Origin: Tubulanus polymorphus
Taxonomy: Eukaryota > Animalia > Nemertea
Length of the DNA stretch: 64,000 nucleotides
Reading direction: 5' to 3'
Assembly (NCBI RefSeq): GCF_964204645.1
Contig: NC_134036.1
Coordinates: 248,001 to 312,000, forward strand
The notes under the pieces: model-generated
What the model was told of the DNA's origin: nothing
The model's database searches: none
What the model saw: only the letters and a program-made list of their open reading frames with translations
Part shown: piece by piece, positions 17,905-63,846 of the stretch
Layout of the letters: every line of letters starts with the position of its first letter
Position numbering within the stretch: position 1 is the first letter of the stretch
Program-made: the position numbers and the translations under genes

Positions 17905-20781
17905 ATGGCGTCACAAACCCAGATATATATTCTTGTTTTGTTCGGTGTTTGTTGCATTGGTAAGTAATGCATGTAATTTATATTCCGAAATATCTTATCA
18001 TTTTAGATTTAACAAACGAATTCAGATTTTAACAAATATAAGATCGAAATAAATATCTTCGTGTGTTGATATATATTTCGAACGTTTGAATTAACTTTCA
18101 TTCAAATTTGAAAAAATCAGTGTAAATTCATGCAAAGTAACATATTTTTATTGTTAGCCTTGGTCCAATTTTGTGGACAAATTTTATTTAAATCTTTAGT
18201 TAAGCCAATTATATTTTGATTCATGTTTTCAATGAGGACAATAATAATTCAAACTTTATGCTTTGGAATGGTTTTTACCTGAAATAGTATTGAAAACTAT
18301 TTTAAATCAGCTCTTAAAATCTTTTTAAAATTCAAGCTTATGACTAGCCACACTTTTTCTTTTGTCCAAGTAGCAGCTATATCGTTCTATGTATCAATAT
18401 TTCGGCAGTATTTAATAGAGCAATCTACAGCTTTCAGGCTCTGGATGAGTCCTTCATAGTTCATCTAAATATTTTGTAAGAGAAATTGTAATTATGTCCT
18501 ATGAAAATAAAATCAATCTATCCGAATGAATAGAGGCACCAAATACGGTAAAAATGATAATTATGATTAATATTATCATCAAGGACATCAGTTTTAAGCC
18601 AATATGAAAAATTGTTATTGAAATTTTGTTGTTGTTCTAGTTGGTATAGTCGGGCAAGAAGAGAACAGAGGTGACGGAAGACAATGGAAACGATGTTATC
18701 AATGTTACCACGAGAGACGTAATCAGTACGACGCCAGCTACTATTTCAATTTAGAATATGGATACATGAAAAGGTAAAAAAATTCACCTACCTTCAAATC
18801 CTAATCCATCTTCTTAATTCTAATCTTCCATTTATTCCTTTAATTAGCTAAATCCTCCTTAATTAAAATCATTGTTTGTCCCATTCCTCATAAATCCTCC
18901 TATATTTGAATATGTTCCTTGAAATTGTCATTCCTTAAAATCGCTACCTCTCTCTGTCCATGTACCTCGCTACCTCTCTCTGTCCATGTACCTCGCTACC
19001 TCTCTCTGTCCATGTACCTCGCTACCTCTCTCTGTCCATGTACCTCGCTACCTCTCTCTGTCCATGTACCTCGCTACCTCTCTCTGTCCATGTACCTCGC
19101 TACCTCTCTCTGTCCATGTACCTCGCTACCTCTCTCTGTCCATGTACCTCGCTACCTCTCTCTGTCCATGTACCTCGCTACCTCTCTCTGTCCATGTACC
19201 TCGCTACCTCTCTCTGTCCATGTACCTCGCTACCTCTCTCTGTCCATGTACCTCGCTACCTCTCTCTGTCCATGTACCTCATATACTAAAACGTGTATGA
19301 ATGTATGAATGTATGAATGTATATGTCTGACCTGTCCAGCCATCTGTAGAAAATCCGATCTGACCTTGATCCAAATTTCTTTCTACAGACCCCCAAAACC
19401 GTATTGAGACCATCATTCAATGTTAATCCTCATGATCCAGGTTACAGTTTCACAGTCCTGGCTAGATTTAATACCAGTCTTAATTCAATAACCGATCTAA
19501 CAACTTAAGTCTAGTGTATTTAGCAAGGCCAATTTTGGTTACGATATGGACGTTATATATTTTCTAACATGTGCTGCTAAACACGCATACATACATTTCC
19601 TAAATATGTATTCAAAAAATCTTCATTTCTAACTACAATTCATATTCGAAATATATAATCTATTTCTAAATCTATACTTATTATTATCACGTCACTCATC
19701 AATTAGTATCATTAGTATTATCAACTATCTCTAATTAGTATCAGTCTGTTGTCTTTTCATTGACTCTTGACTTGTTCACCTGATGCTTCTATACACTAGT
19801 AGCGAAAGCTAGTGCGTCAAATAAATAGTTAAACTATATAATACTACTCGTCTCGTTACTTATTCTGAACCCGGTTAACACGAGGCTACTCTACACATTT
19901 TTCTACCAGGGTTCTATATAGGTTGACTATTTTTGACAAGTTTTGATACTAATGTATAGAAGCCTCATCAGGTGAATCGAATATAAAAATGAATAGTTAA
20001 CATATTTAGTACTATTTGTCTCGGTGTTTATTCTAATAGGCTAATCTACAACAGGCTAATCTACGAATCTTTAAATCTATACTTGTAGGGCGGTTGACGG
20101 GGCGTCGTTTCGGGGTGGAATTCCTTATCACGGGTTTTGTACACCGAATCGTACCTACTCAATTAATGGAGTATTACAGGACTATCTGCCTTCTTCACTG
20201 GAGAAAACATGTTCCAGAGACTGGTACTGCGTGGTAGGCATTCTTTGAAACTATCAATGCATTCATTTAAAGAACTCTCAGCGTCTTACAATTTGGGACG
20301 TTCATTAGCATATATATTTGCATATGCGAATTAAGTTTGAAAATTAAATTTGGTACTTTCATTAGCATACGTATTTGCATATGCAAAGTAAGTTTGAAAA
20401 TTAAATTTGGGAATTTCATCAGCATAATGTTTTGCATAAACGAATTATGTTTGAGAATTTTGAGTCGGTTATTCAAATTTTAGACCTTCATTTGCATAAA
20501 TTTCGAATATGCAAATTTCTTATGAGAGCGTAATTTATTCATATTTCCAGAAAGATTTAGTGGAATTGAATTACAGGAACTACTTTGTGGTGCGGCAGTG
20601 TCGACAGCAGTGTCGCGAGAGATGGAAAACTCTGGCAGACGGTACGAAACTCATCCGGGAATGTTGCGAAGATGATCTATGCAATAGTGGTCGTGACGTC
20701 ACGTCTTCTCGCGTGAGCGTCACCATTTTCGGAGCCTTAGCTTGCGTGGTGACGTCATTATTGCGTAAAATACAATTCTGA
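17905..20781 (+). CDS. GPI-anchored Ly6/uPAR (three-finger, Quiver/Sleepless-like) protein, 4 exons
   Basis: Exons 17905-17959, 18641-18773, 20089-20233, 20551-20781 join in frame: signal peptide MASQTQIYILVLFGVCCI, CYQC start, 10 Cys ending CCEDDLCN, hydrophobic GPI-type tail. Confidence 0.85.
18941..19280. repeat. 26-bp minisatellite x13 in Ly6 intron 2
   Basis: Perfect unit tcgctacctctctctgtccatgtacc. Confidence 0.95.
19767..19976. mobile_element. Penelope-like element remnant with two degenerate minimal hammerhead ribozyme motifs in opposite orientation
   Basis: Plus strand: ttgac..cac-CTGATG-cttctatacactagtagc-GAA-AGCT-A-gtg-c-gtcaa then aataaa. Minus strand at 19933-19976: ttcacCTGATGAggcttctatacattagt. 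Confidence 0.4.
20300..20430. repeat. 57-bp tandem repeat (~2.5 copies) in Ly6 intron 3
   Basis: attaaatttgg..ttcattagcata..tttgcatatgc..aagtttgaaa repeated. Confidence 0.7.
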
Positions 20782-21064
20782 TGACGCAATGAACATTTTT
20801 CGATTACGTCATAGTTTTATGCACAGATCTTGAAGAAATATTTATTCATATTATTAGCTGTAATTATGTAAATTTAGTTGAGAAAAGTTTATTTTTGGAA
20901 ATTTTCTTTTACCACAAAAAATGTTTAGGTTTGGACCAAAGCTTTTAAAACATGTGTACAATTCATATACACGCCACTGTTTATACATTAAACACACGTA
21001 TATAACACGCGTAACACTGTGAAAATGATACAGTAATTTCGATGTCGACAGATTTTGGAGTTCA

Positions 21065-21182
21065 CTATGAGAAAACTGGACTCGTGCGAACAGACACTAT
21101 CAGCGCAAACAGTACTGCAATAAGCGACCCCTTGTGGGTGAAAGAAGAGTTACAGTAACTGCCACTCAAAGAACACTTAATC
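21065..21182 (-). pseudogene. Fragment of the Ly6 terminal exon
   Basis: Matches the 3' half of exon 62482-62700; CC changed to CS; no upstream exons. Confidence 0.75.
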
Positions 21183-22193: not shown

Positions 22194-22204
22194 GGGGATT
22201 CCCC
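22194..22204. promoter_or_regulatory. Perfect NF-kB/Rel site GGGGATTCCCC upstream of RPTP copy A
   Basis: Exact match to the classical palindromic kB element, ~420 bp upstream of the ATG; conserved upstream of copy C. Confidence 0.45.
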
Positions 22205-22623: not shown

Positions 22624-25600
22624 ATGTTCGGCCGAATTCACTTCCTGGTTTTGCTGGTGTTACTGGTGAATACTGTATTTACTGGAGGAACCTCAGGTAA
22701 AATTATTTTCTATACTAAAATACAAAAATGGGCAAAAGAAATTGCTTTCTATTCTGTTGGCCAAATACAATAACTACAAAAAGGAACTGTGTCACTGTCA
22801 GGATTCAAACTATCAATTGTGGGGGGTGGAGAGCTCAGAGAAGAACTACAGAAAGAAACTCTGTCATTGTCAGGATTCAAACTATCAATTGTCGGGGGTG
22901 GAGAGCTCAGAGAAGAACTACAGAAAGAAACTCTGTCATTGTCAGGATTCAAACTATCAATTGTCGGGGATGGAGAGCTCAGAGAAGAACTACAGAAAGA
23001 AACTCTGTCACTGTCAGGATTCAAACTATCAATTGTCGGGGTGTGGAGAAGGCAGCATTTGGAAAGAACATTCTGTTTAAATAATTTTCTTCTTTTTTGT
23101 TACATCAGCCAAATGTTTTGGGAAGAGTTGTACTGGTTGGTTGTGCCATTGCAGTAATACAGCCGTAAAAGTATGTCCAATAAAGGATCAGAATGAAGGT
23201 GGCGCTTTAACGTGTCCAAATCCAAACACTGCATGTGAGTCTACAATAAAAACTCCACATCCCTGGACACCACCAGGATGGACCGGACCAGCTTGTCAAA
23301 TCGGTAAGTTTTCTGTGTCAACTGTTTCTACTCCAGTTAGTTATTCTGAAATGCCCATATAAGGGAAAAACGGAAATAAGATTTATCATTGATGAATATG
23401 TCAGACATCCGTGCTGGCTGATTGTGTTCGGCTAGAGAAACGATAAAAAAATTCACCAAAAAGTTTGGTTTTATCGCGAGAGAATTCAAAACGTTTTGTT
23501 TTCTTGCGTGCGATAACAAAAAGTGGTCAATGTGAATATTGTTTCATCTAGCCCTTAGCCGTACCTTTTTATGTACGGTCCGTCTCAGCTACCATACATC
23601 CGGGACTGTTGTGACCCAACAAACTGAGACACAACATTTTATCCCGTTGAGAAAACAATATCCTTAAATACAATCGATTTTACTCACGCAAAAATGTTAA
23701 TTTTATGTGGTTTTTGTTTTGTAGGAAACGTGGCTCGTGGTAAAACAGTTACAATGTCATCCACTTTCGGTGAGTCAACCGCTATCAAATGTACAGATGG
23801 ACGGACAGTAGCTGACAGTGATACTTCCAGCAACGAACTATGTCACACTAATGCGGATCAAGACGCCTGGATTAGAATTGATCTCGGAACTCAATACGTG
23901 GTACATGAAGTTACACTTTGGGATAGATCAGGAGCGACTGGTTGCGACGCTGAGTGGAGTGAGTACAGACAACTTTTAATTTCTGAGTAGAGTATTTTAC
24001 TCGTTCAAATCAAATCTGATAGAAAAAAAGTGAAACCATCAACTCGACACTCCTCGTTAGATAAGCCCGCTCTTGGTGAGAGATTCTTAAAATAAACCAT
24101 TATTGGTGGATTCTAGCAACCACGTGTATCTATCGAATGACCGCGGTAGACACGGGTCGAACATGAGGCTGGACTCAGTTCGATAACAAGTGTCTGTCGT
24201 ATCCATGGCGATATCGTTAGTTAAACCCAATTTGTTGAAATATTTTGATGCAACTTTACTTTATCAAAACTGCCGTAGAAAATATACGAATTTAACCGCT
24301 TCAAACTCGAATAGAATTTTTCTGCATCTGAAGCAATGGATGAAAATCTTTCATCAACTTTCCTAACTTCATGATGTATTATTGTCCTTCGCGATTTTTT
24401 GATTCTTTTAAATTTTTTCTCAGAAAAACGCGCGCGCAACCTGGAGATTCGAGTTGGAAGTTTAGCATCTAACCAGAAATGTGCTTACCAGGGCCCCCCT
24501 CTCTGTGGTAAACATGAAACATTAGAATGCAGCCCGGGTCCTGTAGTTGGACAATACGTTACTGTTCAACACAAGAACATTAGTAAGGCAGAGTATCTAA
24601 ACCTGGCAGAAATAGAAGTTATCGGGTTCAAATATATCGGTAAGTTTTTCTTAACTATTTGATTAAAGTTGAGAGTATTGATATAGATTATGAATGAATC
24701 TTATTAATTTCTGAAATGACAATAGCTCATCTGTTTTCTGATTAAATAGGTTAAGTAGTGCGGGTGACGCATTACATCTATCCTCCTCACTAGTCGACGC
24801 CATTAATATCGCATTTTATTATATACCGTCTTTAAAATCACCTTTAAAATGTCTGTTTAGCGCCCGGTGATTGCAGTAAGGGATCGAACTCATTTGGATG
24901 TATGATTGAATGTTATCCATGTTACACCAGTGAAAGTTGTAACTATTTGAGTGGTATCTGTGAATCTGGCTGTTCACAGAATTACATCGGAAAGTGGTGC
25001 GAGTCAGGTATATTACGCTGAATCATAGATTCCTGGGAATCTCACTCAATATTCCCTAAATATAGTAACCAATATGAACTAATATATCTTGAATCAATTT
25101 TTCTATTTCAGAATTGAAGTTATTTTCGAATTTGACAAAATCTGTGCTGACAGATAACAGTGTAAAAGTCAGTTGGACAGCTTACTCGGGTTCTGTAGTA
25201 GATTCAGGACGTGGTACTGTCAGCGTTCAGTATCAAGTCGTTCATCGTAAGACATCAGAAAACACTTGGACTAATCAGGAATCTGCAGGAGTCCTTACAC
25301 ATCACACAATTACTGGTTTAACGCCTAATACCGGGTATAACATAGCTGTTAAACTACAGAAATTAGTGAACAGTCAACTTATATCAACTGCGAGTTTGAC
25401 TAGTCCAATATTAACTATACAGACTTTGTGTGCAGGTAAAAACCCCTCATTCTTATAAACTCTTAATCATCAATTCAAAACATAGAATTGTGTTAAACAT
25501 GTTTGTCTTACTGCAGGTCCATTAAACGGTCCTAAAGATGTTCGTGTGGTGTCCACAGCGGTCGAGGACAGTAACACGTGGCCCCAGACAACCAATCTGA

Positions 25601-28600
25601 TACTTGCATGGACCGTAAGTGTGCCTCAACCAGAATTACATAAATTCACCTGATGCTCTGTTTATGCACCTTCTCTTTCACTGACACACGATACAAACTC
25701 ACGACTAAACGAAATTAGATACGATTTAAACAGAGCAGTGAGTTGTATATAAACCCAGATGCCCCAAATTGGGACGACCAAACCAAATTCAAAACTCTTC
25801 TCACGGATAAAAAACTACATGGTCCAATTGGGGAATACATCTCTCGAGGCTTTGAAATCCTAGATACTGGTAGTTAATAAGGAACCACTGTTATCCCTAT
25901 TATTGTTGTTATTGATGAAAATGTTTATGCTTTGTAAATACTACTTGTAAATACCACTCTGTACATCTCGACCCGAAATGGTGCAATCAGTACAATAAAG
26001 AGACTTTTGAATTGAATTTTGAATTGTAGTGAACTATTATTATGTTGCAGGCTTTAACTGCTGCAGAGTTACAGTGTGACGTCACTAAAGCTGTTTATCA
26101 AATCCAATATAAACAACTGAACGGACAAAAATGGACCACAACAGTGGCGCAACCTACCGGCCACACACTTACAGGACTAGAACCATATACTGATTATGAA
26201 ATTAGAGTTGGTGTAAAGAATGACGTCACTCAGAAGTTTGTCTACAACAAAACTATAAATTACAAAACAGCGACTGCAGGTAATTCAGAAACGAAACGAG
26301 ACGATCTTCTGAATTCCTGAAGGTTTCAAATATGAAACCAACAACGCGAAAAGTTCAGCGACCTTAGCAACTCGCTCAACAATCCAGTTTCCTAATAATC
26401 AGTATCTATGGTAATTACCCCGGTTAAGTAAATCGTCCATATCTTTATAACTTTCCATTTATTTCAGCTCCCGGGCCTGTGACGTCACTCACTGTCTCTC
26501 AGCAACAAACCGAGAGGGCCTTAAGAGTCACGTGGTCTGCACCCGATAAACCAAATGGAATTATCACTAAATACAGATTATGGTACAAACTTCTCAAATA
26601 TAAAACTTGTCCGACTCAAGCACAGGGAGGTGAACCTAAAGAGGTTTCGCCCTCACCAAATACTGCTGTAGAACATGTATTCACTGGGTTAAAGCCTCAT
26701 GCGGAATATGAAATCACGGTCTCGGCCGAAACCTCGGCTGGTGGCTTAGACTCAAACAAGAGGGCAGTTACCGGGACAACTCTTCAGTCTGGTTAGTTAT
26801 GAAATTATCATATTGAAAATGTTATAAGTTACATTCTTTTTGAATTGTTTTAGAGTTTAATGAACATTTCCATGTTACAGCACCAACTGGTAAACCTGGC
26901 GTGGCTGATGTCACTGTTGAGACTATTCCAAATAGCAAAATCAAGATTGACACTTATATTGATATCAACTTCAAGGATTTGGCGTGTGAAAACCAGCATG
27001 GACCTGTCAAACATTATAGATACAAGTTACTGGAGAAAGATACGATGAATCTTGTTAAAGATGGAACAACACCGAATAAACAGTTCAGAATAGATAAACT
27101 GGTCCCGTTTACAGAGTATGAACTGACGTATAAGTGGGTGAACAGTAAAGGTTCCAGTAATGAATCTCTAAGTAAAATATTCACAACTGACGAAGCTGGT
27201 GAGTTTTTCAATATTCAACTCATTTTGACTTCAAATTTGAGGAAATTGAAAGAAGCATGTTTGAAAGTATTTATACATTTCAGTTCCAGGTGTACCGATC
27301 CCTGAAGCTCGATCAGCTGCTCCAAACAGTATCATATTCGCGTGGAGTTCTCCTGTTCCTCCGTTAGCAAGAATAACCAAATATGCATTTAAGTGTGGTA
27401 ATTCAACTAAAAATAATTCGAAAATTCAGCAAATAACTACGGAGGATGTTGAACCCAATGATGTGCTTACAAAAACAGTGTCTGGACTCACACCAAACAA
27501 ATGGTATGGTTGCAAGGTAGGTTTGAATTTATAAATCCTATATTTGGTAACAATTCAAAATTGAAACTGAAAATATGTTCATGAATATTTACAGGTTGTG
27601 GCACTAGGTAAAAAGGGTTGGGGAAATTGGAGTGAAATTGTTTACTTTTTGACGCAGGTCGGAAGTAAGTAAAACAATTTGTTGAAAATGTCAATTCACA
27701 GAACCGTGTTATAAATGTTTAATTTGTCTGTGGTGTTTATTTCAGTACCAGGACCTCCCGCTTCTCTCGACTTCTCATTCACAAGGGATACATTTAAATC
27801 AACATTGACATGGGCGTCACCAAACAGTCCCAATGGTGATATCACTAATTATCGGGTAGGAATAATGTTGTTCTGGCCAGCAGAGGGCACCACCTGCTCT
27901 ATACCGTAACGTGTCTCCAATCTGTTTTCAGCTCACGTGTGAACCCATCAGTACAACTTCCACAACACCTTTACCAGACATAAAAACAGTTAATAAACCT
28001 ACGATCGAAGGCTCCATCACAACTTTAGACATAACGACGTCACTGATACCTTTTACTCAATACAACTGCTCAGTTTTTGCCTCGACTAGTAAAGGTGAAG
28101 GGTCGCCAGCCAGTGTAAGCTTCTGGTCACCGGGTAAGTCGTTAAAACATATCAAAATTCAACCTTATGTCACGTGCAACTAGTTAAGTATTCAACTGAT
28201 ATTTCAGGAAAAATAACAATTCCTCAACTGGTTGTCAAGAAAGCAGCGGTAACAGACACGACTGTTACACTTCAAATAACACGTGTTAACACTGGTAACA
28301 TTACGTAAGTGTCCTTCAGCCTTTTATCCATAGATAACGCATGCTTTTATAAAACAATATATTGTCTGATTTTCAGCGGTTACGAGGTGATCGTGAAGAA
28401 ACACGATGGACCAATCAACCGTCGCCGGAAGCGCGCAGTCAACCAATCACAGTACGTCTCATACGGAGAAGCTAAACAGCGAGGATTATCAGTTTATATT
28501 ACTGCAGTTCTACCACCGGAAGTGCCCTCTGAGTTTATAGTTGGTGATACACGTGACTATAGTGGTTACTTAAATGCTCCTCTAGAAACTGGGAAATCTT

Positions 28601-31600
28601 ACAGTTTTATTTTAGGAATCATTGAGAATTATAACGGAGTGAGTTCATCTTGTCTCTAAATGTGAATTGTAGTTTCCAAATTTAAAATGACTTCAATAAT
28701 TTGTTTTCAATTTTTCAGGAAACGTTTCGGCATTATCCGTCAATAGAACAGCAAGAAAGAATCATTGTTAAAACACCGTCTAGTAATGCAGGAATAATAG
28801 GTGGCGTTGTTGCAGTTGTTGTCATACTGATATTGGTTGCTGTTGTTCTAGTTATAATCTGGAGGTACGAATGATTAGCGGCCACCGTTTGATGACCACT
28901 ATATCCATCTATTTGAGACAATAAAATACGTCCAATTCCTATGTTCCAGACGTGGATGCTTCAAACGTAGGAATAAGCAGAACAATTCTCCTGTTCCAAT
29001 GAACAACATTATGCAAAATAATGGTGCAAGTGCAAGTCAAGCTCCTCCACCACTCCCAGCAGCTGTCAATCAGGGAACCGTCAATCAGGCGTTAGCAATG
29101 GGTACTGTGATTCAATAAGACGCACGTCTTTCTGTAATTCCTCCTTCTCCAAAATGAATTCGATTCTAGAATCTTATTTGCTCTATAGATGATGAAAATG
29201 AATACGAAGTGGTCGTAAGAGATGGTACCCTCATCAGCGAACTGTTGAACCATACGCTTAACAAGTCAGCGAACTCTTGGCAAGAAATGACTAAAGAATT
29301 TGAGGTAAATATAGAATATCAGTGGCAACCAAACGAGGTTAAGTCTTTAAGCGTGTGAGTTGAAATTTGACTAGAAAGTTCTGCATCTGCATGATATGTT
29401 ACCGCCTATTGTATAAATGTTGCACCCATAGAGTCAGTTGTGAGTTGAATGGAGGTTGAATTAAAACATTGAAGATGAACCAAGAGTCAAACTTAACCAT
29501 GAACTTGGACTCCAGATTGTTACAAACAGTTCCCAAAACGGTCAATAGGTTCATGATCGTCTCTGACTCTACGAAACAATCTGACTTAACTCCTGCCAGT
29601 AATCCAATAAGGTTTACTGTGTTTAAAAACCTTGAAAAGAAAAAACCTTGACTAACACCTAGGTCTCGTACACTCAAGACCAGCGTGCTTACTGTTAGTC
29701 CAACACGCCATTTGGCTCTCTCTCTGTCTGGTCAGTGGTTATACAACTTGAACTAATTGAATGATAACTATTTACAGAGCATACCCAAAACGATCAACGG
29801 GGCCAGCGTCAACGCATTCCTGAAGGCAAACTTCCATAAAAACAGATTCAAGAACATTATGCCCTGTAAGTATAAAGTAACTAAGAGGCAAATGTTGAAA
29901 CACTGATATATTTATAGACTCATTCTATAAACTTTTATAAGTTGAATTGTGGAACTTCCTCACATAGCATTCATGGTTTTTACATGAGGCTTTTGGTATT
30001 TACAAACTAACATCTGCATAGTTTATGTCATTCTATTGAGTAAATGCTGTTGTTTTTTCCAGATGATTCGACTAGAGTTGTTCTGGAACAAATCGGTGAC
30101 GATCCAACGTCAGATTACGTCAACGCCAATTATATTCGGGTAAATTATTCTCTTCGAGAAAATGAGGTGTCTACTGTTGTTGTTTCTGATGGTACTGTAG
30201 AACTGATAGGCAAGTTTTCTCTTGCTAATTATAGGGGTCGCAAGGTGATGAGACGTACATTGCGAGCCAAGGTAAGCTTTGAGTAATAAAGCTTTTGGTG
30301 ATTCATATTTTGAAAATCATATATATTTCTTCGTGTTGTTAGCCCCGATTCCAAGCACTTTCATTGACCATTGGCGGATGATTTGGCAAGAGAAATGTCC
30401 GGCTATTATTGTACTCACTGATCTGACTGAAGGACAAGACAATGATAAGAAGGTACAGAAATACTTTTAGATGCTACTATGTAAACAAGAGAATTAGGAA
30501 AAATTAGTCTTTTCATATTCCAATTGCAGGTGAAGTGTCATTTATATTGGCCAACAAAACTGAATACAAAAGGTCGATATGGAGATATAACAGTGACAGT
30601 TGCAAAGAAAATGGAAAAACACACTGAACCTCCTACTTTTGTACATTTTCTATCAATTACAAAGGTATGATCATATCTTTATTCTAGAAAGTAAACCATG
30701 TCCGATGTTACCTTGTTCCACATATGTAAATAAACTGTCTCTCTCGATGCGTAACGTTAGATTTATTTTATAGCGTGGCCACAAACAAGCGCATAATCTA
30801 ATAGTGTTTCACTATCGAGGATGGCCGGATCATGGTGTACCGTTCCCGGCTTCATCTGTTGTTCGTATGCAAGAGTTCATCAAACGGCGTCTCACCGAAC
30901 AGAACCAGGGACCAATACTCATACACTGCAGGTAAAGTTTGAGATAGAGAACAAAGTCGAAACATACTTGTTACTGAGAAGCTTCCTATGTATAGTTCCA
31001 CAACATTTGGTTCAGTTTCAAGACTCAAGAGTTCAAAACATTCATTTTTAAAGATTTGTCCAGGGCATAGGTCCCAAGGAATACCAGAAAGAACTGTCAA
31101 TATATTGTAATTGGACTACGTTTTTTTTATGATATGGATGTTTGTAGTGCTGGTGCTGGAAGGACTGGTAGCTATATAGCTACAGAATATCTACTGAGAC
31201 AGGCCCAAACTACTGGACGAGTCGGAATCTTCCCGCTGTATCGAAACCTGCGACAACAAAGACCAGAAATGATCCAGAACACGGTAAACCTTAATCTGTA
31301 CTAACTGTCTTTCATTGCACGATCTAAAATCGAGAACTTCTCAAACATGTTGTGTTTTACTATCATTTACTGCAGAAACAGTACATTCTCGTGCACCAGA
31401 TTCTACTGGAGGAACTGGTACTGGGACCGGTGGCATACCCGACCACGAGTTTCAGAGAATCATACGAGGAAATAAAAGCAATGCGTCCTGTATCTAGAAA
31501 CGTATCTGATAAAATAGAGGAGCAATTTCTAGTACGTATAGAGTTAGATAAGCTGCCTGAAGAGAAATTCTTACATATAAGAAAAACTTGTCAAAATGTT

Positions 31601-34610: not shown

Positions 34611-34830
34611 TCAATAAATTGACATTGAGTTCACTATGAGAAAACTTGACAATATCAGCGCAAACAATACTGCAAATAGCGACCCCTTGTGGGTGAAAGA
34701 AGAGTTACAGTAACTGCCACTCGAACAACACTTTATCTCCTTCGTATAAGTGGGACCTTTAATCGTCTCCTCTACACAATCCGGGCTACATTTCCTCGTC
34801 ATGAAGAAAGTACCGTCTCTTAGCGTAATC
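34611..34830 (-). pseudogene. Orphan copy of the Ly6 terminal exon
   Basis: Near-identical to 62482-62692 (..RKCSPDC..KCCSSGSYCN..) but lacks the splice acceptor and upstream exons; C-terminus altered by a deletion. Confidence 0.75.
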
Positions 34831-35121
34831 ATTGATTACATGTTTACCCGACAAAATATAAATGGTACAAAAATTGATAAATTTGTGCCCGCATTGTTAA
34901 CAGGATGGTCTTATTTTATGTCATTCATTACCCGCACCGGATAGTGGTGCATTCAACTTTATCTCACTGTTAAAAACAACTTTATAAAATTCCGAAAGAG
35001 CCGATATTCAAACTGCCTAAAAATAAACTTTCATTATTACACGGATCGATATTGCAGGAAGATATATAAAATAAAACATATATGAAAACGTGTTTGGTAT
35101 ATAGGGCTGGATTGTGCTAAA

Positions 35122-49206: not shown

Positions 49207-49217
49207 GGGGATTCCCC
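49207..49217. promoter_or_regulatory. Perfect NF-kB/Rel site between the divergent astacin-like and RPTP-C genes
   Basis: GGGGATTCCCC within a block homologous to 22070-22345. Confidence 0.45.
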
Positions 49218-53000: not shown

Positions 53001-56000
53001 TTAATCATCAATTCAAACACAGAATTGTGTTAAACATGTTTGATTTACTGTAGATCCATTAAACGGTCCTAAAAATGTTCGTGTGGTGTCCACAGCGGTT
53101 GAGAACAGTAACACGTGGCCCCAGACAACCAATCTGATACTTGCATGGACCGTAAGTGTGCCTTCATGCTGGTGTTCATTTATGCACCTTCTCTTTCACT
53201 GACACACGATACAAACATGTAGTGAATTATAATTATGTTGCAGGCTTTAACTGCTGCAGAGTTACAGTGTGACGTCACTAAAGCTGTTTATCATGTCGAA
53301 TATAAACAACTGAACGGACAAAAATGGACCACAACAGTGGCGCAACCTACCGGCCACACACTAACAGGACTAGAACCTGATACTGATTACGAAGTTAGAG
53401 TAGGTGTAAAGAATGACGTCACTCAGAAGTTTGTCTACAACAAAACTATAAATTACAAAACAGCGACTGCAGGTAATTGAAAAAAGAATGATCTTCCAAA
53501 TGCTAAATATCCCAGTGATGATCTTTCAAATTACAAAATGTTTCAAAACCATGTTTTTGTTATGTCAGTAAAATGTTTTGGGAAGAGTTGTACTGGTTGG
53601 GAGTGTCATTGCAGTAATACAGCCGTGGGCGAATGTCCAATAAAGGGTCAGAATGGCGCTTTAACGTGTCCGAATCCTAACACTGCATGTGAGTCTACAA
53701 TAAAATCTCCACCTTGGACACCACCAGGATGGAGCGGACCAGCTTGTCAAATCGGTAAGTTTTCTGTATTAAACCGGGGTCACTGGTTTTATATAACTGA
53801 ACCCCAGATTTTTTTAGATTAACGCATTAACTCAGCTAATTCCTTGTGTGAAGCTTACATTATTAAAATAATGCCAATGTTCATTGATAAAAATGTCAGA
53901 CATGAAACATCCGGGGAACTGCTGCGACTTTGTAAACTGAGATCAACTCTAATCATTTCATCGCGTGAAGAAAAAGTGTATCACGAAAATAGAATGTATG
54001 TTTTGAAAAAAAATCATGGAATAATTTTCCGCCGAATCTAAATCGAATCTCCACAAAATGTGTTTTGTAGGAAACGTGGCTCGTGGTAAAAATGTTACAA
54101 TGTCATCCACTTACGAAAAGTTTACCGGTAGTAAATGTACAGATGGTCAGACGAAGAGTGGCATATGTCACACTAATTTGGATCAAAACGCCTGGATTAG
54201 AATTGATCTCGGAACTCAATACGTGGTACATAATGTTACACTTTGGGATAGATCAGACGCGACTGGTTGCACCAATAACCCTACAGAGTGGCGTGAGTAC
54301 TAATTATCATTAAAATGATTGATGAGTAACTTTACTATGAAAGAACAGACGCGACTGGTTGCGATACTGATTGGAGTGAGTACTAATTATTATCATTGAT
54401 CATTTCATTTAAATCTGATAGGAAAATTACAACTTTCAACACGAAAAGACTAGCTGAATATAAAATCCCGGTTAAGATGAAAGATTTTCGATTTCAAACA
54501 ATTATTGATGGATTCTAGCTGCGAATATGCTTATTAAATTATCATTATCCGAGGCATTTTCGTGAAACTGAACCAAGTTCGACAACAATGTGTCTGTGGT
54601 ATCCATGGATAATGACTATGAAAAAAGTCTGTTTTCAAATTCAACTTTTTAAATAAAAGAAAATTGTGACAGTAGAAAATATACGAATTGAACCGTTGTA
54701 AACAGGAGTTGAATTTATCTGCATCCAAAGCAATGGCAGAAATTGTCTCTTTAACATCCATAACTTTCATGGATTATTGTCCGTTTTGCGATATTTCGAT
54801 TGAAGTGTTTTAATTTATTCTCAGAAAAACGCGCGCGCAACATGGAGATTCGAGTTGGCAATGAATATGGCACAAGTACGAATATTTTTACATCTAACCC
54901 GATATGTGCTTACCAGGGCCCCGCTCTCTGTGGTACACATAACACATTAGAATGCAGCCCAGGTCCTATAGTTGGACGATACGTCACAGTTCAACACAAG
55001 AACATTAGAAAGGCAGAGCATTTAAACCTGGCAGAAATAGAAGTTTTCGGGTTCAAATACATCGGTAAGTTTTTCATAACTAATCATTAACAGTTGAGGG
55101 TATTGAAATAGCGTATGAATGAATGTTATTAATAAGAATTTTTGTAATTATTATGATTCATCTTCGTTGTTTTCTGGATTAAGTAGTGCGAAGGCGCATT
55201 ACATCTAATGAGATTAATCCACCTCATTTAAAAAGAATTCATAGTCAACGCCATTGATATCACAAACATCGTCTTTTAACTTCACCCAGTCCTGGTCACC
55301 ACAGTGATCTACGTTGTTCTACGGTCCTAATGTACCCACCTGTGGTCCATTAGACACTAAGGTTCTTGGTGAACTTTCTACGTATCAGCTTTTAAATTTC
55401 TGTTTAGAACCTGGTTATTGCAGCAAGGGATCGAACTCATTTGGATGTATGATTGAATGTAGATGTTACAACAGTGAAAGTTGTAACTATTTGAATGGTA
55501 CCTGTGAATCTGGCTGTTCACAGAATTACATCGGAAAGTGGTGCGAGTCAGGTATATTACAATGAATCAGAGATTCCAGGGAATCTCACTCCCTATTCCC
55601 TAAATATAGTAACTATTATGAATCGGAAATGACTGAAAGTGAAATATCCGTGTAACCTCAATGTGACTTTATTCATTGAAATGCATATATTTTCAGAATT
55701 TAAGTTGTTTTCGAATTTGACAAAATCTGCGCTGACAGATAACAGTTTAAAAGTCAGATGGACAGCTTACTCGGGTTCTGTAGTAGATTCAGGACGTAAT
55801 GGTACTGTCAGCGTTCAGTATCAAGTGGTTTATCGTAAGATATCAGAAAACACTTGGACTAATCGGGAATCCGCAGGAGTCCTAACAAATCACACAATTA
55901 CTGGTTTAACTCCTAATACCGGGTATAACATAGCTGTTAGACTACAGAAATTGGTGAACAGCCAACTTATATCAACTGCGAGTCTGACTAGTCCAATACT

Positions 56001-59000
56001 AACTTTGTGTGCAGGTAAAACCCTTTAATTCTAATAAGCCCTTAATCATCAATTCAAACACAGAATTGTGTAAAACATGTTTGTTTTACTGTAGATCCAT
56101 TAATCGTATGAGTTAAATTTGTCTGCGATTTCAGTCCCAGGACCTCCCGCTTCTCTCGACTTCTCATTCACAAGGGAAACAATGAAAACAACATTGACAT
56201 GGACAGCACCAAACAGTCCAAATTGTGATGTCATCAATTATAAGGTAAGAATCCCCTTGTTCTGACCAGCAGAGGGCACCACCTGCACTATACTGTAACA
56301 TATCTCCTATCTGTTTTCAGCTCACGTGTGAACCCATCAGTACAACTTCCACAACACCTTTATCAGACATAAAAACAGTTAACAAACCTGAAATCAATGG
56401 CTCCATCACAACTTTAGACATAACGACGTCACTGATACCTTTTACTCAATACAACTGTTCAATTTTTGCCTCGAATAGTAAAGGTGAAGGCTCGCCTGCC
56501 AGCGTAAGCTTTTGGACAGGTAAGTCGTTAAAATATCAACCTCAAGAGTAACCATTGACGTAACTTGTCACCAGGTAAAGAACTGATATTTCAGGTAAAA
56601 TAACAATTCCTCAACTGGTTGTCAAGAAAGCAGCGGTAACAGACACGACTGTTACACTTCAAATAAAACGTGTTAACACTGGCAACATAACGTAAGTGTC
56701 TTCCACATATTTATTCATTGATAACGCTTGAATTTATAAAACAATATTTTCTCTGATTTTCAGCGGTTACGAGGTGATCGTGAAGAAACACGACGGACCA
56801 ATCAACCGTCGCCGGAAGCGTACGGTCAACCAATCACAGTACGTCTCCTACGGAATAGCTAAACAGCGAAGATTATCAGTTTATATTACTGCAGTTCTAT
56901 CACCGGTGCCCTCTGAGTTTATAGTTGGTGATACACGTGACTATAATGGTTACTTTAATGCTCCTCTAGAAACTGGAAAATCTTACAGTTTTATTTTAGG
57001 AATCGTTGTGAATTATAACGGAGTGAGTTCATCTTGTCTTTCAATACAAATTGTAGTTTACAAATTTCAAAATGATTTTAATTTCTTTTTGACTTTTCAG
57101 GAAACGTTTCGGCATTATCCACCAATAGAACAACAAGAGAGAATCATTGTTAAAGCACCGTCTAATGCAGGAATAATAGGTGGCGCTGTTGCAGCTGTTC
57201 TCATACTGTTATTGGTTGCAGTTGTTCTAGTTATAGTTTGGAGGTATGATTGATTAGTGGCGACCCCTATAGTTTAAGACAATAAAACATGTCCAATTCC
57301 TATTTTCCAGGCGTGGAGGCTTCAAACCTAAAACTGAAGAGAACAATTCTCCTGTTCCAATGAACGACATTATGCAAAATAATGATGCAAGTACAAGTCA
57401 AGCTCCTCCCCCACTCCCAGCAGCTGTCAATCAGGGTACCGTCAATCAGGCGTTAGCAATGGGTACTGTGATTCAATAAGACGCTCGCCTTTCTGTAATT
57501 CCTATTTTCCCAAAATAAATACGATTCTAGAATCTTATTTGCTCTATAGATGATGAAAATGAATACGAAGTGGTTGTTAGAGATGGAACCCTCATCAGCG
57601 AACTGTTGAACCATACGCTTAACAAGTCAGCGAACTCTTGGCAAGAAATGACTAAAGAATTTGAGGTATAAACAATGTCATTGAGAGACAAAAAAGGGAA
57701 ATGATTAACCGCCCAGGAACCAGTTGTAAGTTTAGAGGTGACACGAAGTTTATGTGTGATATTTTGCTGCATCCCTGTCTGTGACATATTCGAAAATGGG
57801 AGAGAGAGTTGGTCTGTGTAGCGCAGAGTGCTGCTATAGGCATCCCCTTAAAGCCAGCTGGCAAAGGGCAGCAAGGAATCCCACTGGAGTCGGTTGTCTG
57901 TATTGTCACTGAAGTTGATTAAAACATTGAAAATGAACACAAGAAACTCTAGAAGCAAACTTAATAATGACCTGTGGAACAGTTACCATTGTCTCTGAAT
58001 AAACCCCTGCCACAAATACAAAAAGGTTCACAACCGTGCACCAAACTTTGCGTTTGTGTTCAAGCGATCACCAATGCACTCACTGGGAATCGAACCCGGG
58101 TCTCGGACACTCAAGGCCAGCATGTTAACCACTAGACCAACAGGACACACGTGCTTGGTATGATGTTCAATACAGTTCATCATTTTTCCATACATTACAG
58201 AGCATACCCAAAACGATCAACGGGGCCAGCGTCAACGCATTCCTGAAGGAAAACTTCCATAAAAACAGATTCAAGAACATAATGGCCTGTAAGTACAAAT
58301 TAACTAAGAAGCAAATATTGAGACGCACTGTGTTGTTTGAATAAATATTTTCTAGATTTCATATATTTCATAGACTTAATCTAAATACCTTAATAAGTTT
58401 AATTGAGAAACCTCCTCACTTAAGATGCATGGCGTTTACACGAGTCATTCGGTATTTGGGTAACTATTGATACATATGTATTGGTTTTCATTCTAATGCT
58501 GTGTTGCTTTCATAGATGATACGACTAGAGTTGTTTTGAAACAAATCGGTGACGATCCAACATCAGATTACATCAATGCTAATTATATTCGGGTAAGTAA
58601 TTATCTTCCATAGAGGTGTAAACCGTTGTAGTTACTGATGGTACTGTAGAACTGATAGACCCGTTTTCTCTTGCTAATTATAGGGGTCAAAAGGTGATGA
58701 GACGTACATTGCGAGCCAGGGTAAGCTTTGAGTAATAAAGCTTTTGGTGATTCATATTTTGAAAATCATATATATTTCTTCCTGTTGTTAGCCCCGATTC
58801 CAAGCACATTCAACGACCATTGGCGGATGATCTGGCAAGAGAAATGTCCGGCTATTATTGTACTCACAGATCTGACTGAAGGACAGGACAAAGATAAGAA
58901 GGTACAGAAATACTTTTAGATGCTGCTGTGTAAACAGGCAAAAAGTAAAAAAGTGGTTTGTCATATTCCGATTGCAGGTGAAGTGTCATTTATATTGGCC

Positions 59001-61666
59001 AACAAAACTGAACACAAAAGGTCGATATGGAGATATAACAGTGACAGTCTCAGATAGAATGGAAAAACACATTGAACCTCCTACTTTAGTACATTTCCTG
59101 TCGATTACAAAGGTATGATCTTATCTTAACCTTGAATGGCTCAAACAGCTGTTTTTGTCTCCTGATCCTGGTTCTGACATTTATAACATTATGATAATGG
59201 GTTGTTTCAATGTTAGGTCTACCATATTTCACATCAGTAACGTCTTTTTTTAACGTCTAGTTTCTCTCTCTCTCTCGATGCGTAGTAACGTTAGATTTAT
59301 TTTATAGCGTGGCCACAAACAAGCACATAATCTAATAGTGTTTCACTATCGAGGATGGCCGGATCATGGTGTACCGTTCCCGGCTTCATCTGTAGTTCGT
59401 ATGCAACAGTTCATCAAACAGCGTCTCACCGAACAGAATGAGGGACCGATACTCATACACTGCAGGTAATCTATCAAATGAAATAGGAAATATCTTCAGA
59501 ACCTACTTGTTACTGAGAAGCTATTTAGGTATAGTTTTACATTATTTGGATTACTTTGACTCCAGAGTTCAAAACATATATTTCTAAAGATTTGTCCAGG
59601 GTACAGGTCCCAAGGAATACCAAAACGAACTGTAAATGAATTGTAATTGGTCTTTGTTTTTTTAATGATATCGTTGTTTGTAGTGCTGGTGCTGGAAGGA
59701 CTGGTAGCTATATAGCAACAGAATATCTACTGAGACAGGCCCAAACTACTGGACGAGTCGGAATCTTCCCGCTGTATCGATACCTGCGACAACAAAGACC
59801 AGAAATGATCCAAAATATGGTAAACCTCAATGTCTTTCATTTACTTACTCCCAGGTTTCCAAATTCTAGACCTTCTTCGACGCAATGCTGTTTTTTACTG
59901 CAGAAACAGTACAGTCTCGTGCACCAGATTCTACTGGAGGAACTGGTACTGGGACCAGTGGCATACCCGACCACGAGTTTCAGAGAATCATACGAGGAAA
60001 TAAAAGCAACGCGTCCTGTATCTAAAAACGTGTCTGATAAAATAGAGGAGCAATTTCTAGTACGTACAGAGTGAGACGAGCTGCGTGAAGGAAAATACCA
60101 ACATTTTAGAAATACTTGTCGAAATATTATTTTAGATATACAAAGCATCTACTCCGATACAAGGTCCTGCAACGTTGGCGATTGCAAAGCTGCCAATCAA
60201 CGTCAAGAAGACACGATACCAAGAAATACTTCCGGAAACCAAATATCAAGCGAGGATTTCCAGCGAAAAAGAGTCGTTCATCAATGCTTCATTTGTGCAT
60301 GTGAGTGAAGCTAAACGAAGCTCGATATATTTGATTTCGGCCCCTTGTCTTGATAAATACTTTGTATCAAACATCTATAATGGAAAGATCTTGGTAATTG
60401 GTTATAATTACTTTTATTTCATGATGTCAGAGATATACACTTTATATATCACAACAATGTTATGGGATTTATAATCAAAATCTACACTGGGTAAATATCA
60501 GTTACATTGATAACAACATAACTCGATTATTCGGACAATTCATTGTTTTTACAGACGATCACAGATGACAACGTGTTTATAGCTACACAAAGTCCGATGC
60601 CGAACACAATTATTGATTTCTGGCAAATGATCTTTAACTATAACTGTGAACGTATCGTTATGATGCATCAAGAACATCCGCATGATCCGGTAAGGCTTAT
60701 TCCAAATGTTTCAAATTTCGTATTTGCTTTCTGTCCATACGAATGTGTAGATGTATGTTTTACAAAATTTCCAGACTTATGCAAATTACTGGCCGACCGA
60801 TGGTGTTATGCAATTTGGACCGTTCGAAGTTTCGTTAGAACAATCGCATACGATGTCAAACGAACAAGTCATCTATCGTGACCTCATACTACAGACTGAC
60901 AATGTAAGTGCTATCCTACAAAAGTTCAAAATCTAATTAAGCAGAAGATGTGTTGTAACTCTGTTCAACTGGAGGATCTGTTATTGCCCTTTACAAAATA
61001 GTTCGCCGGGATTTGATGGTCGAAAAACAGTTGACATAAATGAAATCGATAGCATCCTTTCAGGGAAAGATGGCCGCATATACAGAATATCCGGCATCTC
61101 TGCTATTTACTATAGCCTGATCCCAATCGATGTTCTTTTTATTCTTTGCTTTCACAGGAATCGCGTCAGATTCGTCAGATCCAGTTTTTAGGATGGCCTG
61201 AGGATGAGTCGGTTCCTGATGTACAGAGTCTACTTGACTTCGTGCAGCTTGTTTCAAAGGAACGCGTCACCAGTCCGATTGTTGTACATTGCATGTTCGT
61301 ATCTTAGCAACGTCTGAGTTAATTATTCAAAACAACATCACAGATTTGAACGATTGTGCAAATTTTACAGGGACAGCACAACGAGAACAGGACTATTTTG
61401 TGCGGCATTTGAATTGATCACCAAGGCGCCATCTAGCGAAGAGATCGATATCTATCACTGTATTCAAAAGCTACGAATGACTCGACCTCAATTCATTCCA
61501 AATTTGGTAATTTCCTGATATTTTCTAGATATTCTGAATTGAGAACTTGTAATGTTATTGATGTCTTTTGTTAATCTACGTATTTCAGGAACAATACAAA
61601 TTCCTGCATGACCTGGTGATACTGTATTTCCAAGGATTCGAAACGTACGCAAATTTCGTTTCCTAA
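50096..61666 (+). CDS. Receptor-type protein tyrosine phosphatase, copy C, with a duplicated lectin-EGF-FN3 module, ~34 exons
   Basis: SP 50096-50159; module 1 at 50685-53472 (Cys-rich, F-lectin, EGF, 2 FN3); 96-nt phase-1 intron; module 2 at 53569-56014 (Cys-rich, F-lectin, EGF, FN3); FN3 exons from 56135; RRRKR; TM exon from 57101; KNRF, DYINA, WPDHGVP, HCSAGAGRTG; D2; ends YANFVS* at 61666. Confidence 0.88.
50217..50650. repeat. 72-bp minisatellite x6 in RPTP-C intron 1
   Basis: Same unit as 22787-23050. Confidence 0.9.
50940..50982. mobile_element. 29-bp micro-MITE-like hairpin flanked by (g/a)attaac direct repeats
   Basis: gattaac [catggactctaa-gacgt-ttagagtccatg] aattaac; absent at the paralogous sites near 35573 and 53816. 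Confidence 0.55.
58079..58150 (-). mobile_element. tRNA-derived SINE head in an RPTP-C intron
   Basis: Reverse strand has A-box tggtctagtgg and B-box gggttcgattccc; does not fold as a tRNA. Confidence 0.55.
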
Positions 61667-62481
61667 TTAACATATAACGGAAGTCAGTTGCTCACAGAAA
61701 GGAGGACAACATTATGTAATCATTTAACCAGAAATGATATTCGTATTTAGCTGTGATATTTAGAGAAAAATTTCCTGCTAATTATTATTTATGGAAGCAT
61801 GAAAACAACTCACTGACCAATGAATATGTTAAGAGTATTTCGGTGCAGGTCCAATTTCGCGAATCATATTCTTAATTTTGTAAAATTGACTTTTCTTTTC
61901 ATATTAGATTATTTGAAATTTCTCTGAAAAAATAGAGGAGTCCCATTGCTATTATCATCATCACTACGGTCGCTTTTATAAAACAATCAAAAATGGAAAA
62001 ATGAGAACTTGTCTATCGCGTGGAACTGGGCCAAACATCATTAAAAAAAAGTATCCGACCCAATCAGATTCCTTGAATATATTTAAATATACGAATCATA
62101 TAGCCTTGTTTTTAAAGTTATAGAATTAAGTTTATTTTATTTATTCGAGTTTTCTTTTAATATTTTTTGTTTATTGCGCTATAACATGATAACATATAAA
62201 ATAACTATGATATTTATTTGTGCATGTGTTCATTATATATAAAATATTTGCAATAAAAACCGCTTGTGAAATGAAAATATTTCAAACGTCCTTATATTTG
62301 CTTTCAAGAGTTTCTTTTTGAGAAAAGAATATGTTTATTCCTGCTGCAAAAGAGTGATGTCACTTCGTGCCTATTTTTGATACAAGCCAGAAAGAAACAT
62401 ATTCATTCAACTCTGAATATTAACAAATGACATTGATGATGAAATGATACAGTAATTTCGATGTCGACAGTTTATAGTTTA

Positions 62482-63846
62482 CTATGAGAAAACTGGACTC
62501 GTGCAAGCAGACAATATCAGCGCAAACAGTACTGCAATAAGCGACCCCTTGTGGGTGAAAGAAGAGTTACAGTAACTGCCACTCGAACAACACTTTATCT
62601 CCTTCGTATAAGTGGGACCTTTAATCGTCTCCTCTACACAATCCGGGCTACATTTCCTCGTCATGAAGAAAGTACCGTCTCTTAGCGTTATCGTTTCTTT
62701 CTAGAAAATAAAATTGATCGGTTTTTAATAGACATCTAAATTAGTTAGAGGTATCGTATTGTAAATATAGGATAGTGTTGCATTGTATTTTGTGTGTAAT
62801 TGTTAAAGATCGGACTCTCAAAGAGTCCAAACCTCGGCAACAATGCCCGAAAAGATGTGGGTGTCTGACTAGATGGGGCACTGTTTGACAATACCACATT
62901 GGATGAAGCATATTCTTGAATAGGACTGAATGATGGCCGGTTTTTTGTTTTCAGTTGCTAGGAGACGATCAAACACTTACCATACAATACGTGGTATCTC
63001 CTCCGTTGCCACAGCGATATGAGGTAAAGTCTTCCGTGCTGCTGCGGCTACCGTACAGTCGATCCGGGTCCTCGTAACAGTAATGGATCGACCTGACACC
63101 TGGCGGAGAAAATCACTCCATACAATACATACAAAGTTACAATGTATTAACAGGGATGGATCTAGGAAAGGCCAGAAGAAAGGAAAAGACATTTTTCAGA
63201 TTGGCCTAAAGCATCCAAGTCAATCGCTTCTACTTTGGTGGTAGATACTTTTTTTTAAGAAAATAGAACAGAAAATATTCAATTTCCGAAAGGATGGGCT
63301 TTAAAAAATTTGCAGGTTTTAACGAACTTTGAATTAACGAAAAGGGCAACCTCAATGGGAAGGCAGGGGTCCAGACCCCCGACACCACCCCCCTTAATCC
63401 GCCCTAGTATTAAATTCCTATTGTTTATCACCAACCACGAGCTTGTTGTAGCTAGCTTACAATGTATACATATGTTTGGCAAATTTAGGCGTTTATTTGC
63501 GAGATTTAGGCCGACGAATTTTTGAAAAGCGAATTGGTAATTTTTGAATGATAAAGATCTTTACCTAGATTGTAATTCCTTCGCTTCATGCTCGATACCT
63601 CCTTCAAGAACAGATCCGACTCCACGGTCAGCGGGTCGTATGTACCGTATTCGCATTGGTAACATTTCCACGCCAGACCGTCAGCGATTCCTGTACCGAA
63701 AAAAATGGCGCTCAATCAGAATATTTCAACCGTCTAAAGGCTATTCGCATTACTAGATTATATAAAGATTATGACGTGTGCCATTGATTACCTGTGACGG
63801 AGTAAACTGTGATTAAAGTTGCCGTTAAAATGGTCGTCAAAGACAT
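62482..63846 (-). CDS. GPI-anchored Ly6/uPAR (three-finger, Quiver/Sleepless-like) protein, 4 exons
   Basis: Exons 63846-63792 (SP MSLTTILTATLITVYSVT), 63690-63565 (WKCYQC), 63099-62981, 62700-62482 (CCSSGSYCN + hydrophobic tail); 10 Cys; splice phases consistent. Confidence 0.87.

Follow-up and report, generated by a model that had tools for sequence, protein, structure and literature searches.

The window analysed here is a 64,000-nt stretch of the Tubulanus polymorphus (Nemertea) genome, positions 248,001-312,000 of NC_134036.1 in the assembly GCF_964204645.1. Three genes for receptor-type protein tyrosine phosphatases (RPTPs), copies A, B, and C, are found in the window. Each has a spliced model that stays open, with introns that all obey GT-AG and agree in phase. 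The features, in window coordinates, are as follows.

17905-20781, + strand: four-exon Ly6/uPAR-like gene a, whose 187-aa product has a signal peptide and a hydrophobic C-terminus
21023-21182, - strand: 3' fragment of Ly6 gene b, 93% identical to 62442-62599, marking the edge of a duplicated unit
22194-22204, no strand: kB-consensus palindrome, ~430 bp before copy A
22624-33187, + strand: RPTP copy A, 33 exons, 1740 aa
23725-24639 (exons 23725-23958 and 24424-24639), + strand: lectin head A, His/Arg/Arg triad, CDR4 Asp changed to Gly
34648-34833, - strand: 3' fragment of Ly6 gene b, 97% identical to 62510-62695, directly upstream of copy B
35122-44824, + strand: RPTP copy B, 27 exons, 1316 aa, one lectin head, D1 intact
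35877-35990, + strand: intronic relic inside copy B, corresponding to the 5' half of one more lectin exon that differs from the others
36183-38478 (exons 36183-36407 and 38239-38478), + strand: lectin head B, within copy B
46005-46164, - strand: 3' fragment of Ly6 gene b
46718-48071, - strand: open model of a single-copy, four-exon gene for a small secreted protein of 152 aa
49207-49217, no strand: second occurrence of the kB-consensus palindrome, ~890 bp ahead of RPTP copy C
50096-61666, + strand: RPTP copy C, 34 exons, 1781 aa, two in-frame lectin cassettes, D1 intact
51315-52194, + strand: lectin head C1 of copy C
54071-55064, + strand: lectin head C2 of copy C, with a relic exon end at 54339-54383
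62482-63846, - strand: four-exon Ly6/uPAR-like gene b (172 aa), from which the three 3' fragments derive

The open spliced models confirm the claim of a preliminary description that three intact RPTP paralogues with four F-type lectin domains are present. Copy A encodes, in order, a signal peptide, a Cys-rich EGF-like module, an F-type lectin, an EGF, seven FN3, a TM, D1, and D2, with a furin-type site within the last FN3. Its active site is intact in D1, and D2 is degenerate. The EGF-like modules are called by Cys pattern and do not reach a Pfam match. The full copy A protein matches PF23144 (Fn3_PTPRU, E 4e-12) and, in two stretches, PF00102; it has no Pfam match to MAM or Ig, and carries lectin and FN3 instead. 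The number of FN3 repeats is 7 in A, 3 in B, and 5 in C, and the PTP domains of the three copies are 91.9% (D1) and 96.4% (D2) identical. These counts and identities bear out the earlier observation that the phosphatase halves are nearly identical, and that the lectin loops, lectin number, and FN3 stalk vary.

The copy A model equals the RefSeq protein XP_074661320.1 at every residue, and residues 92-1781 of copy C equal a second RefSeq protein. The RefSeq annotation, in which A and B are merged, C is truncated, and the genes are named kappa-like, is corrected here. RefSeq isoform X2 joins the tail of copy B to copy A. Alternative splicing was rejected as its origin; this A/B chimera is probably an annotation artefact. 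A search for contigs encoding either RefSeq protein gave no match. Spliced RNA derived from the family was found, and one run contains copy C-specific pieces with spliced joints. On the possibility raised earlier that only one copy is expressed, the RNA evidence thus speaks for the family and for copy C.

Flanking Ly6 genes, kB sites, and a secreted zinc-less astacin had also been listed at this locus. The two Ly6 genes are real and intact, with a signal peptide, a Cys pattern ending CC-x4-5-CN, and a hydrophobic GPI-type tail. The last exon of gene a matches Toxin_TOLIP (E 1.8e-4) and UPAR_LY6 (E 4.3e-4), and gene a is single-copy in the genome. The fragments of gene b look like passengers of duplication; gene a is a probable bystander, and both genes look like bystanders. 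The small secreted protein resembles astacin by eye, and its model is indeed open and lacks the zinc-binding motif HExxHxxGxxH. Its identity as an astacin is unconfirmed: exon-by-exon searches of Pfam, PDB, an atlas, and homologues gave no match, and a single-sequence model has a pLDDT of 42. As the Ly6 and astacin-like genes are single-copy and were not found beside the other family clusters fetched, a role for them as functional parts is not supported. A kB palindrome does precede A and C, but it is one ancestral motif that was duplicated. The block is absent before copy B, and consensus kB sites are no commoner in the window than in shuffles (2 places versus ~3 expected). The kB sites are therefore weak evidence of immune control. 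The Ly6, astacin-like, and kB features together give little support to the reading of a recognition array.

The four lectin cassettes (A, B, C1, and C2) have a mean identity of 76.7%, with loop indels in frame. The F-type jellyroll fold is supported by an AF2 model (pLDDT 95), for which the best Foldseek matches are lectinolysin, SP2159 modules, 1k12, and 3cqo (TM 0.75-0.80). The His/Arg/Arg triad with H-X26-R spacing is seen in all four heads, and both Arg are nearly invariant in a 100-sequence alignment. The lectin alignment contains the DG and E-x-E-V elements of a putative structural calcium site. The canonical CDR4, R-X-D-X4-R with vicinal Cys-Cys, is absent from the window heads, which have a single Cys. 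The distance between the CDR4 Arg residues is 13-16 versus the canonical 7, and the loop is 6-9 residues longer. Because CDR4 is longer and without vicinal cysteines, and head A is without the Asp, fucose binding by these heads is not assured. Relic pieces of lectin exons are located at 35877-35990, 36464-36488, and 54339-54383, and a runs test among the four cassettes indicates mosaicism (p=0.012), so that the relic cassettes and mosaic exons described before are both substantiated. C1 groups most closely with the head of a tailless neighbour and that of a dead-type gene, rather than with heads A or B (support 96/90 and 98/94).

The catalytic Cys codon of D1 is at 30927-30929 in A, 42537-42539 in B, and 59461-59463 in C, all on the + strand. 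The HC-X5-R P-loop, the WPD loop, the Q-loop Gln, and the aromatic pTyr loop (KNRF in A and C, KNRY in B) are present in all three copies. As these motifs are intact, phosphatase activity of D1, and with it direct dephosphorylation, is plausible from the sequence. A genome census of the catalytic exon yields 21 copies: 17 with Cys changed to Gly, one broken copy with Cys, and the three of the window, which alone keep an intact active site. The dead-type D1 is under purifying selection (omega 0.27). The survey of a further family cluster, at 1.32-1.47 Mb, covered four short loci and drew otherwise on pattern counts and RefSeq proteins. Just past the window lies a neighbour with the same head, no PTP domains, and a short Tyr-motif tail. 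A self-contained three-gene locus was considered and rejected, as the family is genome-wide; judged by its sequences, the trio makes up the subfamily with intact catalytic residues within a family of roughly 21 genes. The locus had been read as an array of variable ectodomains with constant signalling. The divergence of heads and tails agrees with this, but the signalling end varies as well, being active, dead, or absent across ~21 genes.

Based on the phylogeny, the window tails form one clade (99/100) against the dead clade (100/99). The lectin cassettes and the stalks of the window are not monophyletic (AU p=0.012 each). Head exons are equally distant within and between types (pS 0.07-0.18), and several ectodomain introns are also common to both types. 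Tail exons 19, 26, 28, 30, and 33 differ between types at pS 0.6-0.9. These facts show that active, dead, and tailless genes draw their heads from one common pool, which genomic exchange has reshuffled among ~21 genes. The exons kept distinct include the juxtamembrane region, the neighbourhood of the P-loop, the start of D2, and the C-terminus. That the exons setting the type stay distinct suggests selection keeping the outputs apart while the heads mix. The exchange is not limited to heads, since tail exons 21, 23, 24, 27, 31, and 32 are also homogenised between types. Homogenised ectodomains with divergent tails, a feature of paired receptors, are thus found in this family.

The sharing of heads among sister genes and the loss of the catalytic residue indicate a family built like the on/off paired receptors of vertebrate immunity. 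We somewhat favour the reading of a young paired-receptor-like glycan-sensing family that evolves by birth and death, in a probably immune setting, with the trio as its catalytically intact members. The signalling end takes three forms: an intact D1, a Cys-to-Gly D1 that is still conserved in 17 genes, and a Tyr-motif tail without PTP. Each head might bind a somewhat different fucose- or galactose-type glycan. Ligand binding through an intact copy would lead to removal of phosphotyrosine and damping of the signal. Dead or tailless copies could bind the same partners, or dock them, but leave the phosphotyrosine in place, so by its architecture the family may turn one class of ligand into outputs that are opposite or graded. 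The surveillance of microbes, parasites, or altered self would be the most likely setting. It can be speculated, only tentatively, that one recombining repertoire of hypervariable F-type lectin heads is distributed over three kinds of signalling end with opposite phosphotyrosine outputs: an active phosphatase, a pseudophosphatase that holds substrates, and a bare Tyr-motif tail. Opposite outputs would then come from enzyme versus pseudo-enzyme, not from ITIM versus ITAM, and such an invertebrate paired-receptor system is conceivable but at present doubtful.

A glycan-sensing family could also be diversified without being paired. The active and dead subfamilies would work in separate cells or pathways, and the sharing of heads would simply result from ectopic conversion between similar sequences. 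The promoter and signal exon of the trio occur only in A, B, and C, which also have their own juxtamembrane exons. The private promoter and signal exon fit separate use, as does the homogenisation of some tail exons. We regard this explanation as rather unlikely, as the exons staying distinct include those that set the signalling type, and the tailless gene next door has a head sister to C1.

Selection differs between the two ends of the protein. Among copies, dN is 0.148 in the lectin versus 0.041 in D1 and 0.017 in D2, so the lectin is more divergent at nonsynonymous sites than the PTP domains, which passes a check set in the preliminary description. For lectin exon 1, M2a places 15% of sites at omega ~5 (LRT 57.5); the PTP domains show no such positively selected class. 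The loops are 55% identical versus 87% for the framework, and the variation is concentrated in loops around the conserved His/Arg/Arg pocket. Simulations with recombination only (n=10) give LRT up to 23, and pS is higher in the loops too (0.26 vs 0.14), so the signal is partly due to segment swapping and alignment uncertainty. The lectin loops are hypervariable and mosaic, and probably under diversifying selection; the phosphatase tails are under purifying selection (omega 0.2-0.3). Drift of young duplicates under relaxed constraint, with unequal crossover making and breaking copies and no selected recognition repertoire, would accord with the several broken copies on C7, C9, C10, and C57, the intronic relics, omega of 0.79 over the whole lectin and 0.9 over FN3-1, and a pN/pS of only 1.07 over all loops. 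It is nevertheless improbable, because the observed LRT exceeds all ten null simulations, the loop indels of open cassettes do not disrupt the reading frame, there is almost no variation in the triad and scaffold, and the PTP omega is low.

The F-type lectins of eel (AAA and its isoforms) and oyster bindin (PMC5712786) resemble the window heads in fold, triad, and variation of the CDR loops. Like the window heads, these lectins also recombine and vary in repeat number. Unlike these, the Tubulanus proteins are membrane receptors with an enzyme tail, and their CDR4 is extended by 6-9 residues without vicinal cysteines, with loops varying in length and not just in sequence. By analogy with bindin, which diversifies alike in lectin number, mosaic exons, and selected loop sites (PMC5712786), the family might serve as a gamete or allorecognition receptor, on the egg side or in self/non-self recognition of tissue. 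This has little likelihood, given that the closest architectural analogues are tied to parasite resistance. Bindin is a secreted acrosomal protein of few loci, and diversity at allorecognition loci is usually allelic, not among paralogues; both count against this role. That the copies are an assembly artefact of stacked haplotypes, as near-identical tandem copies and the merging of A and B in RefSeq itself might suggest, is extremely unlikely: intron identity is 83-88% and the intron alignments have hundreds of gap columns, exon counts differ (33, 27, and 34), the copies lie on a contig of chromosome scale (11.5 Mb), and DNA contigs match copy C-specific intron pieces exactly, so the mis-assembly named in the preliminary description is rejected.

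To our knowledge, nobody knows how the lectin-headed RPTP clusters of snail parasite-resistance regions signal. In this one genome, heads that are almost alike are combined with an active, a dead, or no phosphatase, which amounts to a natural experiment. If the paired-receptor-like reading holds, the logic of balanced signals in vertebrate immune receptors arose independently in a spiralian from different parts, and ligand control of an RPTP could be tested directly. In the available portions of PMC12297450 and PMC13712769, parasite-resistance regions of Biomphalaria contain clusters of fucolectin-EGF genes, both PTP-tailed and tailless. The SudRes1 MEGF/galactose-binding-domain RPTPs and LG5R subgroups 1B/1C described there are likewise clustered paralogues, with an EGF and fucolectin-like head, a single TM, and tandem PTP domains. 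They share diverse ectodomains, domain loss, copy-number change, and adjacent PTP-tailed and tailless forms with the Tubulanus family. The stalk consists of 3-7 FN3 in Tubulanus versus multiple EGFs in Biomphalaria, and the split of active and Cys-to-Gly forms with shared heads is not described for the snail clusters in those portions. The lectin-PTP tails of molluscs, Biomphalaria not among them, branch outside the Tubulanus clade with long branches.

The likeness to paired receptors is that gene conversion keeps the (in Tubulanus, putatively) glycan-binding ectodomains nearly identical, while the intracellular parts diverge. There is no homology. Paired receptors are linked pairs with ITIM versus DAP12/ITAM output, whereas the Tubulanus family has many members on several loci, and its proposed output is an in-built phosphatase, pseudophosphatase, or Tyr tail. 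The R2B RPTPs (PTPRK/M/T/U) share the membrane-proximal Fn3_PTPRU with a furin-type site, the tandem PTP, and the degenerate D2. Their ectodomain of MAM, Ig, and four FN3 is not seen in Tubulanus, which lacks MAM and Ig, and their homophilic adhesion head is replaced by a lectin head. In the pseudophosphatase PTPRU there is precedent for substrate competition by an inactive sister (10.1101/805119). Unlike PTPRU, the dead Tubulanus forms are inactivated by loss of the Cys itself and belong to a multigene repertoire. The Tubulanus tail is 33% identical to that of PTPRT.

Self-comparison reveals three tandem units in the window, and exon-level models yield three open receptor tyrosine phosphatase (RPTP) genes, A, B, and C, whose introns have GT-AG ends and agree in phase. 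A tailless neighbour (L017) is located 1.5 kb beyond the window end.

22624-33187, RPTP copy A, 1740 aa (exon-level model)
35122-44824, RPTP copy B, 1316 aa (exon-level model)
50096-61666, RPTP copy C, 1781 aa (exon-level model)
G000 (T. polymorphus genome), contig C12, ~313550-319100, minus strand, tailless neighbour L017

The A protein is identical to RefSeq XP_074661320.1 (Tubulanus polymorphus). C is identical from residue 92 onward to a second RefSeq protein, which itself lacks the first two exons. No separate protein for B is seen among the RefSeq matches; its tail is joined to the 5' part of A in isoform X2 (P0270, XP_074661321.1), which is probably an annotation chimera. The domain order is signal peptide, Cys-rich EGF-like module, F-type lectin, EGF, FN3 stalk, TM, and two PTP domains, catalytic D1 and degenerate D2; EGF-like modules were assigned from the Cys pattern. 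FN3 repeats number seven in A, three in B, and five in C, and C contains two lectin cassettes (C1 and C2) in frame. The preliminary description, three intact paralogues with four F-type lectin heads and with varying lectin number and stalk length, is thus borne out. A 72-bp tandem repeat is seen in intron 1 of A (22772-23049, 3.8 copies) and C (50217-50638, 5.9 copies), while none is reported in B.

The trio had been proposed as a candidate recognition locus. The three genes are real, but they belong to a larger family, for which ~28 closely related lectin cassettes and ~21 PTP tails were counted; most of these lie on the chromosome of the trio. Among 21 copies of the catalytic-residue exon, 17 encode His-Gly (dead members, with catalytic Cys replaced by Gly). 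The D1 domains of the dead members are still under purifying selection (omega 0.27). His-Cys is seen in one copy disrupted by a stop as well as frameshifts and, among intact copies, only in the three window genes. L017 has the full family ectodomain and TM, but lacks PTP domains and ends in a short tail bearing three tyrosine motifs; the old last exon can still be seen 3' of its stop.

P0163, encoded on the same chromosome, is a more distant paralogue (47% tail identity). Its D1 P-loop keeps Cys while Arg is replaced by Trp, so from its sequence it is a probable pseudophosphatase by a second, independent route; its Cys fits Cys being the ancestral state. Several dispersed copies (L021-L030; contigs C7, C9, C10, and C57) are frameshifted, truncated, or interrupted by stops. 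The one on C10 combines a dead-type tail with a catalytic Cys that is still present. The cassettes of L009 and L010 (C12, ~1.388 and ~1.444 Mb) are identical at the protein level, either by very recent duplication or by an assembly repeat.

The tails do not share the history of the heads. The window tails form one clade (support 99/100) apart from the dead clade (100/99), and the promoter and signal exon are found only in the three window genes. In trees built without L010 (a duplicate) and without the broken copies of C7, C9b, and C57, neither the four window cassettes nor the three stalks form a clade (AU p=0.012 for each), and C1 is placed together with L017 and one dead-type gene. Exon by exon, the distance between types in head exons is no greater than that within types (pS 0.07-0.18). 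Exons 19, 26, 28, 30, and 33 show pS of 0.6-0.9 between types, and some further tail exons are homogenised. Several ectodomain introns are common to different types, indicating that the exchange was genomic; this assigns neither a donor nor a sequence of events.

The four lectin heads are 76.7% identical (dN 0.148, dS 0.187), whereas D1 is 91.9% (omega 0.31) and D2 96.4% identical (omega 0.21) among A, B, and C (Fisher p=0.008). Over 16 cassettes, identity is 55% in loops and 87% in framework, and pN/pS is 1.3-1.9 in CDR1-3 and 0.5 in framework. The contrast noted earlier, of variable loops with near-identical phosphatase halves, therefore holds. Mosaic lectin exons are likewise supported, since recombination among cassettes is detected by a runs test (p=0.012) and an incompatibility test (p=0.001). 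For lectin exon 1, a site model restricted to gap-free columns gives omega ~5 on 15% of sites (LRT 57.5). The EGF-like and first FN3 exons show weaker signals, and no selected site class was found in the PTP domains under the same model. Recombination by itself raises the outcome of this test, with LRT values of 0-23 in ten null simulations that included it. Diversifying selection on the lectin loops is thus probable, although the raw p-value overstates its strength.

The F-type lectin fold is certain. In exon-wise searches the lectin exons match lectinolysin, FBP32, SP2159, and eel agglutinin, and an AF2 model of the lectin head (pLDDT 95) aligns with these same structures (TM 0.75-0.80). The fucose pocket of F-type lectins consists of His, Arg, and Arg (PMC5712786), and this triad is kept in all four window heads. 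In contrast to canonical F-type lectins, CDR4 is 6-9 residues longer and carries a single Cys where those have two vicinal ones, and its Asp is missing in head A. Sugar specificity predicted from these residues is accordingly not certain.

Compared with copy C, run X2, a sequencing run of unrecorded kind, shows splicing across predicted introns with GT-AG ends; among the joints are the one linking exon 8 to the second cassette and the one between the two exons of head C2. These spliced joints mark the run as RNA. A 148-nt piece crosses the C1 hypervariable exon with zero mismatches. Some joints may come from paralogues, and the runs, contigs from one study, allow no reading of levels, tissue, or polymorphism.

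The nearest architecture is found in Biomphalaria, where schistosome-resistance regions hold clusters of fucolectin/EGF RPTPs, some forms having PTP domains and others lacking them (PMC12297450, PMC13712769). The nearest logic is seen in Siglec-type paired receptors, whose similarity is maintained by gene conversion (PMC13358205), and in PTPRU, which competes with active R2B phosphatases (10.1101/805119). The window genes are not R2B members, since they contain no MAM or Ig. Their resemblance to paired receptors is one of architecture.

The variable heads constitute one shared, recombining pool across three kinds of tail. We propose that glycan binding would change receptor clustering, that intact copies would dephosphorylate upon binding, and that dead and tailless copies would hold or dock the same partners, resulting in opposite or graded outputs. 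We give this whole mechanism slightly better than an even chance. Separate pathways, with head sharing as incidental conversion, are possible but unlikely. Relaxed drift is rather improbable. Gamete or allorecognition is improbable to nearly the same degree. An artefact is hardly credible: introns of A, B, and C are 83-88% identical with many indels, which for practical purposes rules out stacked haplotypes, the mis-assembly raised earlier.

The accessory features once ascribed to the locus stand in part. The two Ly6-like genes are each intact, encoding 187 and 172 aa. Three fragments of the 3' end of the second one mark where the duplicated unit has its borders, and neither gene turned up next to the other clusters examined; the simplest view is therefore that both are bystanders. 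The kB palindrome is present before A and C, but as one duplicated site, missing before B. The supposed zinc-less astacin is an open, single-copy, secreted gene of 152 aa without a zinc motif; its astacin homology was not confirmed by any exon-by-exon search. Astacins are numerous genome-wide (at least 163 exon matches in G000). Intron 2 of the small secreted gene contains a 48-bp tandem repeat (47612-47800), and an intron of the first Ly6 gene contains 13 copies of a perfect 26-bp repeat (18941-19280). A plus-strand open frame of 838 codons (13689-16205) has no Pfam match; with a TM-like stretch close to its beginning and a long tail rich in Ser, it probably represents the terminal exon of a membrane protein unrelated to the others.
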